The position numbers and the translations under genes are program-made. A stretch of DNA of 64,000 nucleotides from Lepidodermella squamata (lineage: Eukaryota; Animalia; Gastrotricha), in the NCBI GenBank assembly GCA_047495785.1, contig JBLDXI010000029.1, positions 992,001 to 1,056,000 on the forward strand, written 5' to 3'. A model generated the notes under the pieces. It did no database searches and was not told where the DNA came from. It saw only the letters and a list, made by a program, of their open reading frames with translations. Of the stretch, positions 15,237-49,391 are shown piece by piece (the first letter of the stretch is position 1; each line of letters opens with the position of its first letter).

Positions 15237-15797
15237 TTAGTAGGGAGCGGCGCCAGTCTCGACGGCGACGCTGTACGAGAAGTTGTTGGAGGCGGAGTAG
15301 CTGCCGCTCTTGTGGCCCTTGCGACCCTTGTTGCGCTTGCCGCCGAACTTCTTGTGGCCAGCCTTCTTGTTGAACTTGCCGTGACGCTTGTTTTTGCGGC
15401 CGCCGAACGAGCCCGATCGCGAATACGAGCCAGACTTGGACATGCGCTGGTGCACGCGCTTGAACTTCTTGGTGGACACCTTGCGGGTGTGCTTGTTGGT
15501 GCGAGCGGACACCGACGCGGACACCGACTTGGAGTACGAGCCGCGGCGCTTGTTGCGCTTCGAGACGAACTTCTTGCCGAAGTTCTTCACCGGCCGCTTG
15601 TTCTTCTGGTACGATGAGCCGCTCTTCGAGACACTGTACGAGTAGCTTCGGGAAACTTCCTTGTTTGGCCTGCCACGACCGGCTTCGGTCTCGGTGAAGG
15701 CTGAAAAAGAAGAAACAATGAATATTTGCCGAAAGCACTTGAATGCTTTACCAAGAGCCATGAGGATGGCAACAGCAATGGCACAAGCGAAACGCAT
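15237..15797 (-). CDS. Secreted cationic (Ser-X)n block protein, paralog A (~169 aa)
   Basis: Signal peptide MRFACAIAVAILMALA; phase-1 intron 15701-15751; mature chain K/R/S/G/F/Y-rich with SYSYSVSKS, GSYSKSVSASVS blocks; strong C/G-ending codon bias; TATA box upstream; paralog at 48317-48793. Confidence 0.85.
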   Translation of the reverse strand: MRFACAIAVAILMALGKAFKCFRQIFIVSSFSAFTETEAGRGRPNKEVSRSYSYSVSKSGSSYQKNKRPVKNFGKKFVSKRNKRRGSYSKSVSASVSARTNKHTRKVSTKKFKRVHQRMSKSGSYSRSGSFGGRKNKRHGKFNKKAGHKKFGGKRNKGRKGHKSGSYSASNNFSYSVAVETGAAPY

Positions 15798-15875: not shown

Positions 15876-15882
15876 TTTTATA
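15876..15882 (-). promoter_or_regulatory. TATA box of cationic protein gene A
   Basis: Minus strand reads ccTATAAAAtcc about 80 nt upstream of ATG 15797. Confidence 0.6.
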
Positions 15883-34021: not shown

Positions 34022-37000
34022 ATGTCGGAGCAGGTGACTCTGGAGGACGCAATTAGAAATGCGTCTCTCCTGGAGCTTTTTTCTAGACCTGACCACCAAC
34101 CATCAATAGAAGCGTGCCATCAACCGATTCGATATGTTGAAAACTTTCACACGGCGTTCAAAGATCGAGTTTACTTTGTCGGACCCCTGCAGAAATTCCT
34201 GCCAGACGCTGTAGACATAGCAGAGATCGACGAGTTTATCGACGTGGGCGAAAAATTCGCGGCCGAGCTTTACACTTGGCGAGCTGTTTCTCGCGGTATT
34301 CCACAGGTGGGTCTGGCATTATTACAGTATAATCATTCTTGTAATTGATTTTTTTAGGTTAAGTCAAACGATGATCCGAACAGGAACGAAAATTACGAAT
34401 TGACGGTTGAGGTTCTTGCTCCTGAAGTTGACAAGTTGCTGAAATTCATGGATTTCTGCGACCTCGCTGTTTCTAAATTTGTCGAAATTTTGCGACGATG
34501 TGTTGGTCAAACGGAGCAAAAGTCTTCAAAGAGCTCGTCATCTAACCAGTCTCGGCGAGAATTCGTTTCCGAAACGCTGCTGATCCGTCTAGCTAAAATG
34601 CTAGACATGTTTTGCATTCTAGACGAATTGAAACGTATCAAGTCATCGATTAAAAACGATCACGCTGCTTACCGTCGCGTTGCTCAATTCAAGAGAATTA
34701 TGAATGATCGCGAGTCAGTTGAGAAGTCTCAAATGCTTGCGATGTTTTTGGCGACCAATTACGAGATTTCAAATCGATTGAAAAATTGGCTGTACATCAA
34801 AAGCAACGATTTTGATTTCACTGAGATTCTGTGCGAAATAGCCAACATGTGTGCGACTCAATTTGAAAACGAATGCTTCATCTTTCCGAGTGAAAAGTTC
34901 ATGCTAGTTCGTGTTATTGGGTACACCTTATACATTTTAAACGGATCTGGAGATCCGAGTCTTGCGTATAAGCTTGATTCAAAGAAGAAGCTGCTTCAAC
35001 TCAACCGTTTCGACAAAATTTTCAAGCAAATGGAGGTCGTCTCATTGTACGGCGATATGCAACTCGACCCGTTCCAAAACTACGTTGAACACTCGCCTGA
35101 ATTTGACGCCTCGTTTTGGCCGCTGAGAAAAAGTTCATCTCAATCACCCCAAAGCCAACGCCTTGCGTTGAAAATCCAAGAAGTCAGGGTCGAATTTAGC
35201 AATTTACTCAACGATTTGGCCCGCTTGAAGAACGAATACGTTGTTTGCAATGTCGGTGATAATGTACTACAATGGCCTGATGAATACTGCCACAGAATTG
35301 CTAATTTAGCTATTCAAATCATTCGTTCAATCGGAGCTTGGAATTGCTTAGTAATGGAGACTTTTTCGTGGAAATTGGGCTACCCAACTGACCATCGGTC
35401 TAACCCAGCGTGCCCTCCGGATGACAACTGCGAGCAGTATGAAAGAGCTACGAAATACAACTTTTCGCCCGAGGAAAAGTTGAATATGATTGAGTTGATT
35501 TCGATGATTAAATCACTGCAGAGTGCCACTCATGGAGTTCGTCGGCTGTTTTCAGACGGAATTCGTCGATTTTTGTATTTATCGATGCAAAACTTTTCGC
35601 AACTTGTCCTCCGCGAGCCATTGCGGCAATGCGTTAAGAAAAAGCGAGATTTACCCCGGGCGTTGATACAAGCTGTTCGTCTAGCTTGTTCCGACTGGCT
35701 GGGAGGCTGTGAACCGGCGAATGACCCAGCTTTACGCGGCAAAAAGGACGAACCCGAGCGCCGATTTGAGATTAAAATCGCGAAAAGAGCGGTTTATCCA
35801 AGCGTTACCCAAAGTTACCTACTCAGAACTGCCGTTGAATATCTCGCTTACGAAAAATCGATTGGGAAGGCGAAAACCTTGCGTAAAGAATGGGACCCAC
35901 AGGTTTTGCAACTCCTCGAAACGTTTCAGAAGCAGTCAATCTACTGGCCGTATTTGGTTCAATTAGACCAGAGTTTAATTGATTGCGCTGATTTGAGCCC
36001 GCTTTGGTTCCGCGAGTACTTTTTGGAGCTGACCCTCGGAAAATCGATCCAATTCCCAGCCGATTGCTCGCTGCCATGGATTTTAGCCGATCATATCGTT
36101 CACACGCGGCATCCGACTCATTTGGAAAATCTGCTCTACATTTTGGACTTGTACAACGATTCAGCCATGTTTGCTCTCAGCAAATTGCGAAAACAGTATC
36201 TCTACGACGAAATCGAGGCTGAGGTTAACCTGGTCTTCTCACTGCTGTTGTACAAATTGGGCGAGCAGATTTATTCGTACTTCAAATACCTCGCTGGTTG
36301 CATTTTGTTGGACAAACGTTTTCGAAATGAATGCGCCCAAAAATCGGCCTATCTGCCCTACCCACCTGTCGTGCGATACAAGAGCCTAGTCGCCCAACAC
36401 CATGTCCATTTACTCGGGCGGTATATTGATTTGAAAATGCTGCTGTCTCAACGAATCAATATCGCTATGTTGAAGTCGTTAGATACTGCGATTTCGTTGT
36501 TTGAAGCCTCCGATCTACCGAATATTGTTGAATTAGAGGCGCTGATCGAACTGAATCGATGCGCTCATCAATTGTCGAGTGAGTTGTTCTCGATCATTGA
36601 TTTCGACGATTTGTTAGCCGAGGCTGATGATGCGGTTAATAAACCGATCGGGCGGATTGGCCGTCGAATTATCGGAGTTACAGTCGATTCGTTAATCAAA
36701 AGTTACTGCTACAACGGGTCGACTGAGCGATTTGTGAAAAGTGCCTTCAATCTATCGAATTTAACGTCGAATTCCGCCGCGTTTATGGAGGGAAATCGAT
36801 CGAGGCTTCTCGAATCTACCCCGCCTCATCACCTGTGGGGCTCAAAGGCGTTGAATAAGGCGTTTTCTGAGATTTTCTCGCGGTATTCCGGCTTTGTTGG
36901 ATCGACGCATTTTCGCTTGATGGCGCGATTTTTGGGCTACAACGGCATCGCGACGTTATTCACGCATTTCCTCGAGCATGTTCAAAACGATTTATCACCG

Positions 37001-38667
37001 TCATACACGCAAGGTGAAGCGACTTTGTTGGACCATTTGCGAAATTTGAAGTCAGTCCTGCCGCAGTCTTGCCGGTTGCCTCGGCTCGATTTCGGCGGTC
37101 AGGCGTTGATAACTCGTTATGAAGCCGCCTTGAAAGATTTGATCGCCTGCCCGCAACATTTGGCAGTTTTCGGGTATCTTCGGGAGTTTGGTAATACCCT
37201 GATTGTCTGCATTCATCTCGAGCGTGCCATGAATTTCGAGGAGGTATTCGATTTGAAACAAGCCGGTTGCTTCAATAATATCCTACCCCGGCCGTTTGTT
37301 CCGGTTAAGGACGGCGAGTCGCGGAAGGACCACGATCTAGCTGTGAAAGCCGCGATGAGGCAACAGGAGTTGAAATATCGACCATGGCATGTTTTGGGCG
37401 TTGTAAAAGCGCATTGTTCGAAGGTAGAGGCGGATTTGGCTGAGCAGGCTGATGTCTTAACCCGAGAGCGGCTATGTTGTGGTCTATCGCTGTTCGACAC
37501 GGTGTTAGTCCGGGTCAGAAATTGCCTTCAAGACCCGTTCTTCCGCGGAAACGGCGCGCCTGGTTCGATTCTGCCGAGTGATGACATGTCGGAATTTCAC
37601 CGATTTTGGTCGTCGTTGGTTTTCGTCATGTGTATCCCGGCGCCGGGGTCGCAAGAAACTGTCGAGTCGCTGTTTGGTGACGGGCTAATTTGGGCGGGTT
37701 GTTCGATTATTTCTCTGCTAAACCAGCAGCGGCGGTTCAAGGCGTTGGATTTTTGCACGCGTATCCTGGCGGCAAATCGCTTGAATCCGCACTCGTCGAC
37801 GGGCGATGACGAGCCGGGCGTGAATAAATCGACGAAAACACTGACAGCTGGTATCAAGTTGGAGAAAATGATCGAAAGGTAAATGGAAATTCCATATTCC
37901 ATTATTTTTCATTTTATTTTCATCTACCTAATTGAATTAATTTGAGATTTTTTAACTTCGGAGGCTGAGATATTTCACATTTTCGGTTTCATTTAGCGAT
38001 GATAGAACGACGGATATAAAATGATATTTCATGGGGGAAATGTAGAAAATTAACCAATAATTTTGCTATTTACGTTGTAATTCACTAATTTATATCCGTC
38101 GAAAAAAACGAGTTGATCAAGTTTCTGAAGCCTGTCTATCTTAAAATCTGTGGTAATGTAATCCAGCGCTCCAAATTCTTAGCAATGACTGATTTTTCGC
38201 TAGGTTTAGTTTTACATTTTCATAATTTTCGAAAGTTGGTAGCATAATAGCATCGTCTTTATTTGGATTGAGATGAGATTTGAAGATGGATACAAGATTA
38301 GGATAGGCACATAGATTTTGCGAATTTTGACTTATAAATCTAAGTCTGAAGGGGGCTCACAGTTTTTGCAATTAATAAATCGAATTTTGTGATATTTCCC
38401 CTTATTTTTTAATTCGTAGGTAGGATTTTAGGGATATTTTAAATTTTAAATTCACAGAGCTATTCAATATTTATTAAGTTAACTGTAATTTTCTTGTATT
38501 TCAGAATCCGATCCTATCTGCGAATTCACGACGAAGTTTTCTCTGTGTTCGACACGCATTTGACGCGGCTAAACGGCGGCGGCCCAACCGGCGGACCCGA
38601 GTCATCGATCGCCCAGGTCGAGTTCATCCCGCCTCCAGTATGGAACCCGCAGTCGCAAGATTTCTGA
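34022..38667 (+). CDS. CYFIP: Cytoplasmic FMR1-interacting protein (Sra-1/PIR121; WAVE complex)
   Basis: MSEQVTLEDA, LYTWRAVSRGIPQ|VKSNDDPNR, LDELKRIKSSIKNDHAAYRR, YERATKYNFS, LWFREYFLELT, QYLYDEIEAEVNL, LTRERLCCGLSLF, EFHRFWS. Exons 34022-34306, 34358-37878, 38505-38667. Confidence 0.97.
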
Positions 38668-45674: not shown

Positions 45675-48226
45675 AAATTGTCTTGCTGGCACCGCAGTAG
45701 CGATTACAGCAAATGGTAATACAAAGCAAAATTGATAGTTGGATAGTATTAAAATATATCAACGGCGCCTCACTGACGAGGTGTGATCCGAAGAGGTGGG
45801 TAGTGTAGTAGAATCGGATTGTTCCAAAAAAACAGGATGAAGAAGAACCACACATTTGCCATTATCATAGGACAGGCAGAAACCGCACAAAGGAATTTTG
45901 CTGCCGTAGGATATTTTTATGGGAGAAAAGTAAGGATTCACACCCGAATTCGATGAAATTTTTAGGGTGAATATTTTTCATGAAATGATCGAGGCAAAGA
46001 AGAGCAGAAAAATTACTTCTACAAGAACAGGCTGCGAATACTGTTTTACCACAGTAGCATTCTGATTTCTCGAACGACAGGTTTTTTGAGGATCCACAGG
46101 AAGCGCATAACCCGCCAGCCAGCCCAGGCTTGCCACAACATTCACATGGGAGAGAAGACGTGAGCGATGACCTGCGTCCTCCAAGCAATTAGAGCTTTCC
46201 GATCGACCTGCGACGAGATCGGCTCGAAATTCCTTTCCGATTGCCTTTGAGCCCCGCGATTTTTGGAAAATCAGATAAAAATCTGAAGGGGGGCGCCACA
46301 TTTTCTGACTCTCGTGGAGGAATTCCCCCGTGTGACGCTTTTGATTTGTGAAACCACCTTTATGGATTCATTTTTCTGCCTTCGTTGACGCTTTTGAACC
46401 GAAATTTCAATTGTAACAAACAATTATAGAGGCCCTTCGAAAATGGAGATTGCCGAGGGCTGAAAGTGAGACGTAGCCATTCTGATCAAGTGGGTGTTTA
46501 TGCTTAACTTCATGAAATACCGACAAATCCTCGTATCTTGGCTCACGTTGTTGTGATGAAGCCATTTGAAGAACCGAGGGGCTCTCAAGCAATTTTCACA
46601 CTTTCGCCAGTTTTTTTGTGAGATGACGAAGTTGAAAAACGACGAAAAAAACACTTTAAACCTAGCTATTCATGCCCCGTGACCATGCGGACTTTGATCC
46701 TGAAATACGGAAGCATAATGCCCGCTTGTTGCACGGATCTGCGAGTATAAAGTTGAACAACCTACGTCAGATGCGAAGAACAATATCGGCCATAACACGT
46801 TATGTTGTTTACCCCCTATAGCGCGACACGAATTGCCGGTGGTTTAGCATCTACGGGAGTCACGAATGGTCTCTGGTGTAGCTTTCAAGAGCCTAGAACT
46901 CCATAACATGTATTGACGCCAAGACTAAGTAATCGCTGTACTGTTTCTTCAAACTTTCCTAATATATTTCATTCTCCTGCAAGACCAGCAATGGAGCCTG
47001 CCAGTTCGAAAGAACGTAATTTGAACTCTGAACCATGAAAATTACTGCATAATTGTAGCTTTGCAGGCCTGTACACCCTGGAAGAAGCACAGAAAGTCTT
47101 TGAGCAAAAGCAAAATTCGACGGTGAAAAGATCAATTTCTACTAGCCAGCCGCGTGACAACGCCGGCCGTTTTTCTTCCACCAGTGGAAGCCCACGCAAG
47201 CACGAGCCATGTTATCGCTTGCAATGTAAGCTGTGCTTGGAAACGTTTAGTCAACGCGGCCACCTAGAGAAGCACCTGATGAAAGTTTGCAAGAAAAGGA
47301 CTGACAAACAACTGTCTTCGGACGATATTAACAAACTTATTCTATGGGCTAAAGATAATGTCGCGGATTTGAAGAATTTGAAGAGACACCAGATAAATAG
47401 CCATGTGATCAGTAGAATTGAAAGCATAATGCCACGCCGGTATCCCATCCAGGAGCCATCATATCCACTCGTCATGGACCTCCGCTCGCCAGAAAAGAAA
47501 GGGACGAGTTCTGATGATACGAGAAAGTGAATAAAAGCTTGAAAGCTTATGTGCTAAAGGTGCATAACATCATCTTGGGTCGATATATTCGTTTCGGTTC
47601 CAGCAATCGAAAATTGTTTGCTCAAAATATCTTACGTTTGAAACTGAGTAATGCTCATACTTCACCTGATTGGAAAAACGATCTGGCCTTATCTTATATG
47701 TGCTGTGAAAAAGAAAAAGCTTATTTTTGTGTCATTGAAAACGCTGATTCAAGTGTAATTCTTGAGGTTCCTGACCTTTCTGAAAGGTTCCACTGACTTC
47801 ATCACCTAAAAATACACCCACTTATTGAATCGTTTTCAACAACCAGCCTTACTCAGTTTCAAAGTTTGATTATTTTGAGCACAAAATGTTCGTCTATCCG
47901 CTACTGGAGCCAAGACTGGAACCCCTTCCGATTAGGTACGAGTCGACAAAAACGCGTACTTATTTAAGAAAGAATATCCTCTCCGCATAATTTTTGTATA
48001 AACTTTCAAATTAACTGCTGTTTTATCGCGACTCTTGGCGAGCAATTTGATGGATAATATCTCAAATGAACAGCGCATGATTTATTATCCTTAACTCGTC
48101 TAAATTGTAATGCTGAAGTGAGATTTTTCGCATATCGCCTCCTAATTATTGTCTGATGATGGAATATCATTAATTTGGTACCAACAAGAATTAATTGAAC
48201 TGCGCGATATGAAATGAATCTTCGGG

Positions 48227-48234
48227 TATATAAA
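48227..48234 (+). promoter_or_regulatory. TATA box of cationic protein gene B
   Basis: gggTATATAAAttg about 85 nt upstream of ATG 48317. Confidence 0.6.
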
Positions 48235-48316
48235 TTGTTGGTATTCAGTCGATGAAATCATCAAGTTTCATTTCTTCTTCATTTTTCCTAACTCGGCAAT
48301 CGATCTATTCACCAAA

Positions 48317-48793
48317 ATGCGCGCTATTCTCGCCATCGCTGCTGTTGTCCTGCTTGGACTTGGTAATTGCTAAACGCCTTTCAGTTTTTTCTCATTTTTT
48401 TTAATCTTATTCTCATTCTCCCCAGCCTATTCCGAGGCTAAGGTGTGGAATGTCGAGTCGAAGGAGATGCACCGCAACTACCACAAGAGCGTCAGTACTT
48501 CAGCGAGCCGCTCGTTTGAGAATAAGAAGGCTTTCCGCAAAGGACGTGCCTTCCCGATGAAGAAGCGCCACGGCAAGAAGTTCGGCCGCAAGATGAACAA
48601 ACGCCGCGGCTCCTACTCGAAATCGGTCTCCGTTTCTGTCTCGTTCTCTGGCAACAAGCGCAACTACGGCGGCCGCAAGTTCGGCCGTCATGGCAAGAAT
48701 TTCGGCAAGAAGTTCGGCTACAACTTCGGAAAGGGCAAGGGCAACAAGAAGGGCTCCTACTCCTACAGCAAGTCGGTCAGCGCTTCAAATTAA
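48317..48793 (+). CDS. Secreted cationic (Ser-X)n block protein, paralog B (137 aa)
   Basis: Signal peptide MRAILAIAAVVLLGLAYSEA; phase-1 intron 48363-48425 at the same position as in paralog A; shares NKRRGSYSKSVS(V/A)SVS; AATAAA downstream. Confidence 0.87.
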
Positions 48794-49391
48794 ATGACGC
48801 AAAATAATTATTCCTGATAAATATTTATTTTTCGAATAATTTATGGTAAATAAATGGCACGAGATGTATTATCGATGGTTCCTTTTTTCACGGTCAATTT
48901 TTTTGAAATCTAGGTGGCGATGAATCGATAATTCAAAGTGCTACGAGCGGATGTTTTAGCCGCCTTTTTCATTTGACCTCGCCCAGTATCGACAGGTGCC
49001 ACTCAGAAAAAAAACTCGTCCAGGCACGCGACAACATTTCAATCAACCTTTTTATTTATTTCCGATGCCTTTTCAATGGACATTTCAGCAAAAAATCGTG
49101 ATGATAAATTTAAATATGCGTAATAACTATCGATTTGAATAGCTCAACAAATTCTATCACTCGCGATACAAAGCCGGTAATAAATAACACGAAAGAACAC
49201 CACTACATCTGATCATATACATGGAACAATAACACAGACAGCAAGTTTTGAAAGGAAAAAATCGCAACAAATTTTTTCGACAATTTTTCTATGATTTTCG
49301 AGCAAATAATTTTGTTGTTTGCACGTATCAAAATTGTGAATGACGTTATATTCGACAAATTGGACCGTATTTTTCTATAATTTGTTGATTT

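Follow-up and report, generated by a model that had tools for sequence, protein, structure and literature searches.

Gene B, a small two-exon gene at positions 48317–48793 on the forward strand, was identified in a 64,000-nucleotide window of the Lepidodermella squamata genome (contig JBLDXI010000029.1, positions 992,001–1,056,000). It belongs to a multigene family under purifying selection, here called the Ser-X family, with about 95 intact copies. The products are predicted to be small, secreted, cysteine-free polycations with conserved stripes of alternating serine and a second residue. We lean towards a role as a bulk structural or adhesive secretion whose output is raised by gene dosage.

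Gene B and its transcription signals

Gene B and its first exon were read from the sequence. The coding part of exon 1 (46 nt, 48317–48362) starts with the ATG at 48317 and encodes Met-Arg followed by 13 hydrophobic residues, the n- and h-regions of a signal peptide. Its last base is base 1 of codon 16. The intron (63 nt, 48363–48425) is in phase 1, has GT..AG borders, and is AT-rich with a pyrimidine tract. The coding part of exon 2 (48426–48793) opens with the end of the signal peptide and closes with a TAA stop at 48791–48793.

All signals of gene B are on the forward strand. A TATA box, TATATAAA, is found at 48227–48234, 90 nt 5′ of the ATG, and an initiator-like motif, ATCATCA, at 48257–48263, 30 nt 3′ of the TATA box. 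Transcription probably starts at this motif, which would give a 5′ UTR of about 55–60 nt. The sequence TAATTG at 48192–48197, about 120 nt 5′ of the ATG, is a putative homeodomain-type site (CAATTA/TAATTG) and may function as one. The poly(A) signal AATAAA lies at 48849–48854, 56 nt past the stop. Judged from the sequence, the locus is best explained as a functional, independently transcribed two-exon gene.

The window also encodes CYFIP (34400–37882, forward strand; FragX_IP domain, E = 5e-249) in one unbroken 1160-codon frame, intron-free across nearly its whole length. Other genes in the window include an ankyrin-SOCS-box gene and SH3, kinase, ankyrin and LRR genes.

Comparison with paralog A

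Paralog A, a member of subfamily A1, lies on the reverse strand at 15797–15237, 32.5 kb from gene B. Its exon 1 (15797–15752) has the same length of 46 nt, its phase-1 intron (51 nt, 15751–15701) interrupts the same codon as in gene B, and its exon 2 (15700–15237) was read from the sequence. A TATA box, TATAAAA, is found at 15876–15882 on the same strand, 85 nt 5′ of the ATG and preceded by CCAATTAG. The initial annotation had described two genes on opposite strands with a shared phase-1 intron and a TATA box, and each of these features was confirmed, the TATA boxes standing at −90 in gene B and −85 in paralog A. The common start context that it gave, caaaATGCG, is nearly the same in the two genes, the exact forms being ccaaaATGCG in gene B and caaaaATGCG in paralog A.

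The two proteins have a 16-residue identical core in common, and their shared core motif is GKKF-x4-NKRRGSYSKSVS(V/A)SVS. A shared core had been proposed with three residues after KKF; it is present in both genes, and the spacer is four residues. The motif KNFGKKF likewise occurs in both genes as annotated, but it is upstream of the core in paralog A and downstream in gene B, so the two copies are not positional homologues. The shared GSYSxS motifs also hold up, with two occurrences in gene B and three in paralog A.

Similarity between the two proteins is well above that expected from composition. The Smith-Waterman score of 183 compares with 65 ± 10 for residue shuffles (z = 11.9; 0/2000 reach 183) and with 96 ± 13 for shuffles of 6-residue blocks, a control that preserves local low complexity (z = 6.8; 0/2000). 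The composition-shuffle control proposed in the initial annotation was thereby run, and the similarity beats all 2000 shuffles of either kind. A tblastn search of the window with gene B exon 2 returned paralog A at E = 8e-19.

Family size, gene models and relationships

The 121.2-Mb assembly (151 contigs) was searched with exon-2 translations. Searches, alignments, dN/dS estimates and fold prediction all used exon 2, and exon 1 was analyzed apart. Gene B exon 2 gave 62 matches. Among them are about 40 copies with 80–93% identity across 2.2 Mb of contig C3 and four on C9. Paralog A exon 2 gave 81 matches, including nine A1 copies on C29 with 95–98% identity and about 47 A2 copies with roughly 70–75% identity on C12, C29, C33, C3, C9 and C32. 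A family profile built from an alignment (A1) of 25 members gave 107 matches at E ≤ 1e-5, a census that comes from the genome search alone. About 95 of these are intact full-length exon-2 frames, and about 8 are decayed by stops or truncations. The genome-wide count that had been suggested as a check therefore returns a real multigene family.

DNA-level statistics cover 70 loci and 68 gene models, with 20 further A2 copies left out. A common model of ATG, 46-nt exon 1, GT..AG phase-1 intron and open exon 2 applies in 67 of the 70 loci, in which introns are 41–71 nt and exon 2 has 119–235 codons. Exon 1 is lost in the other three (L009, L012 and L047), one of which also has a premature stop. 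Subfamilies B, A1 and A2 and their intermediates have one exon-intron plan and one promoter plan, and copies are scattered 5–70 kb apart among unrelated genes.

A quick maximum-likelihood tree places gene B with C3 copies at 1.09–1.87 Mb. The intact gene L070 (L070:1360–1827, reverse strand; C29:1208609), about 152 kb past the end of the window, is an A/B intermediate or mosaic with a B-like N-terminal part, an A-type insert (SARTNKH...) and an ETGAA C-terminus. The same tree places it as sister to the whole B-like group (SH-aLRT 97), with A1 and A2 coming next, and as an intermediate it links paralogs A and B.

Several variants of the gene plan were observed. Four long B-type forms (L064, L065, L066 and L068; C3:2.48 and 2.89–2.98 Mb) have 189–235 codons in exon 2 and carry 6–10 tandem GHNFGN-x-Y/W units between stripes, which indicates repeat expansion within the spacer. 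Genes for small secreted basic proteins lie 0.9–1.3 kb 3′ of some B genes (L010:2835–3390, forward strand; L018 from 2778, forward strand; L019 from 2766 in gene orientation, reverse strand). They too have a 46-nt exon 1 and a phase-1 intron, which shows that families of greater divergence follow this gene plan as well. One of them encodes SxSxS..E stripes and the same ...SASN end, and two encode SASASAG and GKHGKH repeats. The L010 neighbor, used as a query against the genome, found itself alone and is a singleton.

Three pairs of loci have identical exon-2 products: L003/L004 (C3:1128116 and 1133393), L022/L023 (C29:918k and 939k), and L051/L052 (C3:3265741, forward strand, and 3276907, reverse strand), the last inverted and 11 kb apart. 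Such identity points to very recent duplication or else to artefacts of amplification-assembly or haplotype duplication. The genome was assembled from amplified DNA and has about 3% heterozygosity (PMC11660948).

Promoter plan and codon usage

The signals found in gene B recur across the family. The sequence TATA[AT]A occurs at −112 to −71 from the ATG in 65 of 68 genes, compared with 0–3 of 68 in equal-sized control windows. Downstream, ATCA[TG][CT] is found 20–45 nt 3′ of the TATA box in 45 of the 65 genes, with a median spacing of 29 nt, and is absent (0) from the mirror-image control window. The sites CAATTA/TAATTG are present at −180 to −96 in 49 of 68 genes versus 3–5 of 68 in controls and are common to A1, A2 and B. 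AATAAA or ATTAAA occurs no more than 130 nt past the stop in 65 of 68 genes. Signals are kept at fixed positions despite flanks that are unalignable, which argues that the copies are independent, co-regulated transcription units.

Codon usage in the family is strongly biased, with a GC3 of 0.86 and an ENC of 34 (31.7 in gene B). Neighboring genes have ENC values of 51–56 and GC3 values of 0.45–0.65. The preferred codons (AAG, AAC, TTC, TAC, GTC and TCC/TCG) are those of cytoplasmic actin (ENC 38) in the same genome. Mean GC content is 0.59 in exon 2 versus 0.32 in introns and 0.36 in flanks, so the bias is specific to exons. Translational selection in very highly expressed genes would best explain it. 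Codon bias is no more than a proxy for expression.

With about 95 intact genes and such extreme codon bias, these proteins likely rank among those that the animal makes in the largest amounts. The genome paper states that more than one locus was matched by 37% of the filtered RNA reads (PMC11660948), which would agree with high expression of multi-copy families like the present one. Genes of this type could escape notice through low-complexity masking and multi-mapping reads, and annotation should proceed with that in mind.

Selection on exon 2

Selection was estimated on exon 2 by the Nei-Gojobori method. Within subfamilies, the median dN/dS is 0.29 for B (463 pairs), 0.16 for A1 and 0.23 for A2, with no pair reaching 1. 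Gene B and its closest copy differ by a dN of 0.036 and a dS of 0.398. Divergence between A and B is saturated by this method.

DNA similarity between gene B and its paralogs sets in no more than a few bases from the ATG and breaks off at the stop codon, and the flanks are unalignable. Third positions of exon 2 are 75–92% identical, and identity in introns and flanks is near random. Within A1, third positions of exon 2 are 92% identical, introns 66% (random is about 50%) and flanks 60–66%; as introns and flanks have diverged, the copies are old. Selection and codon-usage constraint, and possibly gene conversion as well, preserve exon 2. Across the 68 gene models, conservation of exon 2, third positions included, far exceeds that of exon 1, of the intron and of the flanks. 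This suggests gene conversion limited to exon 2, strong synonymous constraint, or both.

Conserved positions fall mainly in the stripes. Of 17 invariant columns, 13 are in Ser-X stripes, which make up 30% of the protein (Fisher p = 2e-5). In 7 of 14 conserved serine columns, some copies have TCN and others AGY codons. A switch between these classes takes two substitutions, which shows that selection acts on serine itself and not on a DNA repeat. Purifying selection, as the initial annotation had proposed, is supported by the dN/dS values of 0.16–0.29 and by the concentration of invariant columns in stripes. Its further statement that the similarity is not low-complexity noise is borne out by the shuffle controls and by the serines kept across codon-class switches.

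The encoded protein

The N-terminus of gene B consists of Met-Arg, a 14-residue hydrophobic run and Tyr-Ser-Glu-Ala, followed by Lys, and has the properties of a signal peptide. The product is probably secreted by means of a 20-residue signal peptide, with cleavage after Ser-Glu-Ala by the −3/−1 rule. The predicted mature protein has 117 aa, a mass of 13.3 kDa, a pI of 11.4, a net charge of +31 and no Cys. Its (Ser-X)n stripes are at residues 21–30, 62–75 and 110–121 of the exon-2 translation, separated by K/R/G/N/F spacers. The mature protein of paralog A has about 147 aa, a net charge of +41 and four stripes.

Across the family, mature proteins have 115–230 aa (13–25 kDa) and three or four stripes, each of 4–10 alternating Ser-X units. 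Residues at X are Val (22%), Tyr (16%), Lys (14%), Phe (11%), Ala (11%) and Gly (10%). Spacers contain 22% Lys, 17% Gly and 12% Arg, with 3.5% Ser. AlphaFold2, run on the exon-2 translation with the family alignment, gave a pLDDT of 49 without any secondary structure, an indication that the monomer is disordered.

Stripe 1 in the B subfamily is an exact (SX)5E. Just 35 of 232 stripes end in S-x-E, the motif of Fam20C-type kinases, so phosphorylation is not predicted for most stripes. Three tandem genes with Fam20C secretory-pathway kinase domains (best E = 5e-59) are present at C7:2760273–2780864 on the reverse strand. Their presence would be permissive for stripe phosphorylation.

Searches for relatives

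Searches outside the genome returned no relatives. A Pfam scan of both paralogs gave no match even at E = 10, B exon 2 had no match in a word index of 5.8 billion proteins, and a feature search of the ESM Atlas gave no usable match. A profile HMM of 25 members gave one match (E = 4e-4) among 1.84 billion representatives. It was rejected as a low-complexity chance match, being an 807-aa acidic repeat protein with RRSSVSSSV strings. The family alignment gave 402 pattern matches in JGI metagenome contigs, of which 0 were confirmed. The initial description of the family as lineage-specific is supported within the databases searched, in which other gastrotrichs are barely sampled and the animal's own proteins are evidently absent (no self match).

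Proposed function and alternatives

From sequence features, we lean towards a secreted structural or adhesive polycation, amplified in dosage and made in bulk for glue, cuticle or scales, or an egg coat. The product of gene B would be released as a 13-kDa, cysteine-free, intrinsically disordered polycation with the layout of a block copolymer, in which three strictly alternating Ser-X stripes are set apart by nearly serine-free Lys/Arg/Gly/Asn/Phe spacers. Many near-identical copies and biased codons would give very high output from few nuclei, and part of the homogeneity of exon 2 may come from gene conversion rather than from selection alone. The protein could then make up much of a secreted material, for instance the glue of the posterior adhesive tubes, the cuticle with its scales or the coat of the egg, although any choice of tissue and material is a guess. 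Ser-X stripes could act as amphipathic beta-strand zippers. They may also be phosphorylated by a secretory-pathway kinase and pair with cationic spacers or Ca2+, a mechanism proposed for caddisfly silk (pSX)n blocks, and Tyr and Lys residues could provide cation-pi contacts and cross-linking.

Two other roles for a secreted polycation were considered, and no homologue of known function was found that would anchor any of the readings. The family could be an arsenal for host defense or food killing, with cationic antimicrobial or bacteriolytic proteins on the body surface or in the pharynx or gut of a bacterivore that bind and disrupt anionic bacterial envelopes. We regard this as possible though unlikely. 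A net charge of +31 to +41, a secreted, disordered, cysteine-free chain rich in Gly, Lys and aromatics, and a large lineage-specific family would all suit such a role, and finding no relatives elsewhere is common for effector-type immune genes. However, mature proteins of 115–230 aa are far above typical cationic peptides in size, and no amphipathic helix or disulphide fold is predicted (pLDDT 49; no Cys). The copies are moreover kept similar and not diversified (dN/dS 0.16–0.29, with many 95–100% identical within a subfamily), and the most conserved parts are the uncharged Ser-X stripes and not the cationic regions. A non-structural binder of polyanions, which we consider distinctly improbable, would package or neutralize an acidic partner (a sulphated or phosphorylated glycoprotein, mucus or extracellular nucleic acid, for example) or serve as a releasing or priming component of the duo-gland adhesive system. 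It would account for the extreme positive charge and the disorder, and the basic secreted families with the same 46-nt exon 1 that adjoin some copies hint at multi-component secretion. No acidic partner was identified, though, and charge neutralization alone leaves the conserved stripes unexplained.

Two further explanations were rejected. Precursors of prohormones or neuropeptides, cut at dibasic sites and with Gly-Lys/Arg as amidation signals, would have the signal peptide, the many KR, RR and KK sites and the F-G-K/R strings seen here. At 28% Lys plus Arg, however, dibasic sites are expected from composition; no repeated conserved peptides lie between them, and the basic spacers vary in length and sequence among subfamilies. 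About 95 gene copies with an ENC of 34 are unlike signaling peptides, and conservation centers on the serine stripes, all of which makes this origin very improbable. We give practically no credence to a non-gene origin, whether a dispersed low-complexity repeat, a transposon fragment or an amplification-assembly artefact with open frames. The low-complexity composition, the few identical pairs (L003/L004, L022/L023 and L051/L052) and assembly from amplified DNA (PMC11660948) would be compatible with it. Against it, similarity is limited to the ATG-to-stop region with unalignable flanks, and splice sites are conserved along with the TATA box, the initiator-like motif and the poly(A) signal. In addition, dN/dS is well under 1, serine codon classes switch, shuffle controls are exceeded, and most copies differ through substitutions.

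The structural or adhesive role preferred here makes the Ser-X family a concrete candidate for a gastrotrich secreted material, and a clean case of how a tiny animal may scale output via copy number. We know of no molecular-level account of gastrotrich secreted materials, and a literature search on gastrotrich adhesive tubes, scale-bearing cuticle and egg shell returned taxonomic papers alone. A more specific proposal, which we put forward tentatively and think rather doubtful, is that a gastrotrich has arrived, by convergence, at the caddisfly and sandcastle-worm answer to making materials under water. The product would be a self-complementary block copolymer, a single small chain in which (Ser-X)n beta-stripes open to phosphorylation are joined to polycationic spacers, with about 100 co-regulated mini-genes encoding it. 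The use of about 100 mini-genes, and not one giant repetitive gene, would then provide bulk output from very few nuclei. If true, gastrotrich glue, scales or egg coat would thereby gain a first component defined at the molecular level.

Comparison with known systems

The family was compared with four known systems. Cationic antimicrobial and glycine-rich defense proteins are similar in their signal peptide, strong positive charge, Gly-rich composition and lineage-specific expansion. Ser-X proteins are much longer than cationic antimicrobial peptides, with no amphipathic helix or disulphide scaffold predicted, and the family is conserved, not diversifying, around a core that is a neutral Ser-X stripe.

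Insect chorion and cuticular families consist of scores to more than 100 small secreted structural genes that are clustered and kept similar. As in those families, each Ser-X gene has its own TATA promoter, a short signal-peptide exon 1 and a single intron, and copy number would serve output. Unlike them, the Ser-X family has no chorion central domain, chitin-binding R&R consensus or Cys, and the sequences are unrelated. It is also far more cationic, with copies dispersed at 5–70 kb and no tight arrays.

Sandcastle-worm and mussel adhesives combine polycationic Gly/Lys/Tyr proteins with polyphosphoserine proteins, and DOPA is central to them. Probable shared features are secretion, disorder, few cysteines, a composition rich in Lys, Gly and aromatics, and small similar proteins made in bulk; the Ser-rich blocks could also carry phosphate. 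The cationic and phosphoserine parts are separate proteins in those adhesives, whereas they would be in one chain here, and there is no homology.

The nearest functional analogue would be caddisfly H-fibroin, which is non-homologous, so that the likeness would be convergent. H-fibroin consists of [(SX)nE]m blocks and G-rich spacers (PMC13267644), in which X is aliphatic or Arg and phosphoserines form Ca2+-bridged beta-domains (PMC4929942). H-fibroin is a single giant, repetitive chain (>300 kDa) whose termini are conserved, whereas about 95 genes here encode proteins of 13–25 kDa, and no homology was found in Pfam or in the profile search of 1.84 billion proteins. Most stripes of the Ser-X family are without a terminal Glu, and Tyr and Phe are frequent at X. 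The likeness may lie in secretion by a freshwater animal, in stretches of 4–6 or more strictly alternating Ser-X units (X aliphatic or basic) placed among Gly-rich and basic spacers, and in a block-copolymer logic with no globular fold. If the stripes act like caddisfly (pSX)n, the convergence would be striking, and the 13-kDa protein would offer a compact template for bio-inspired wet adhesives.
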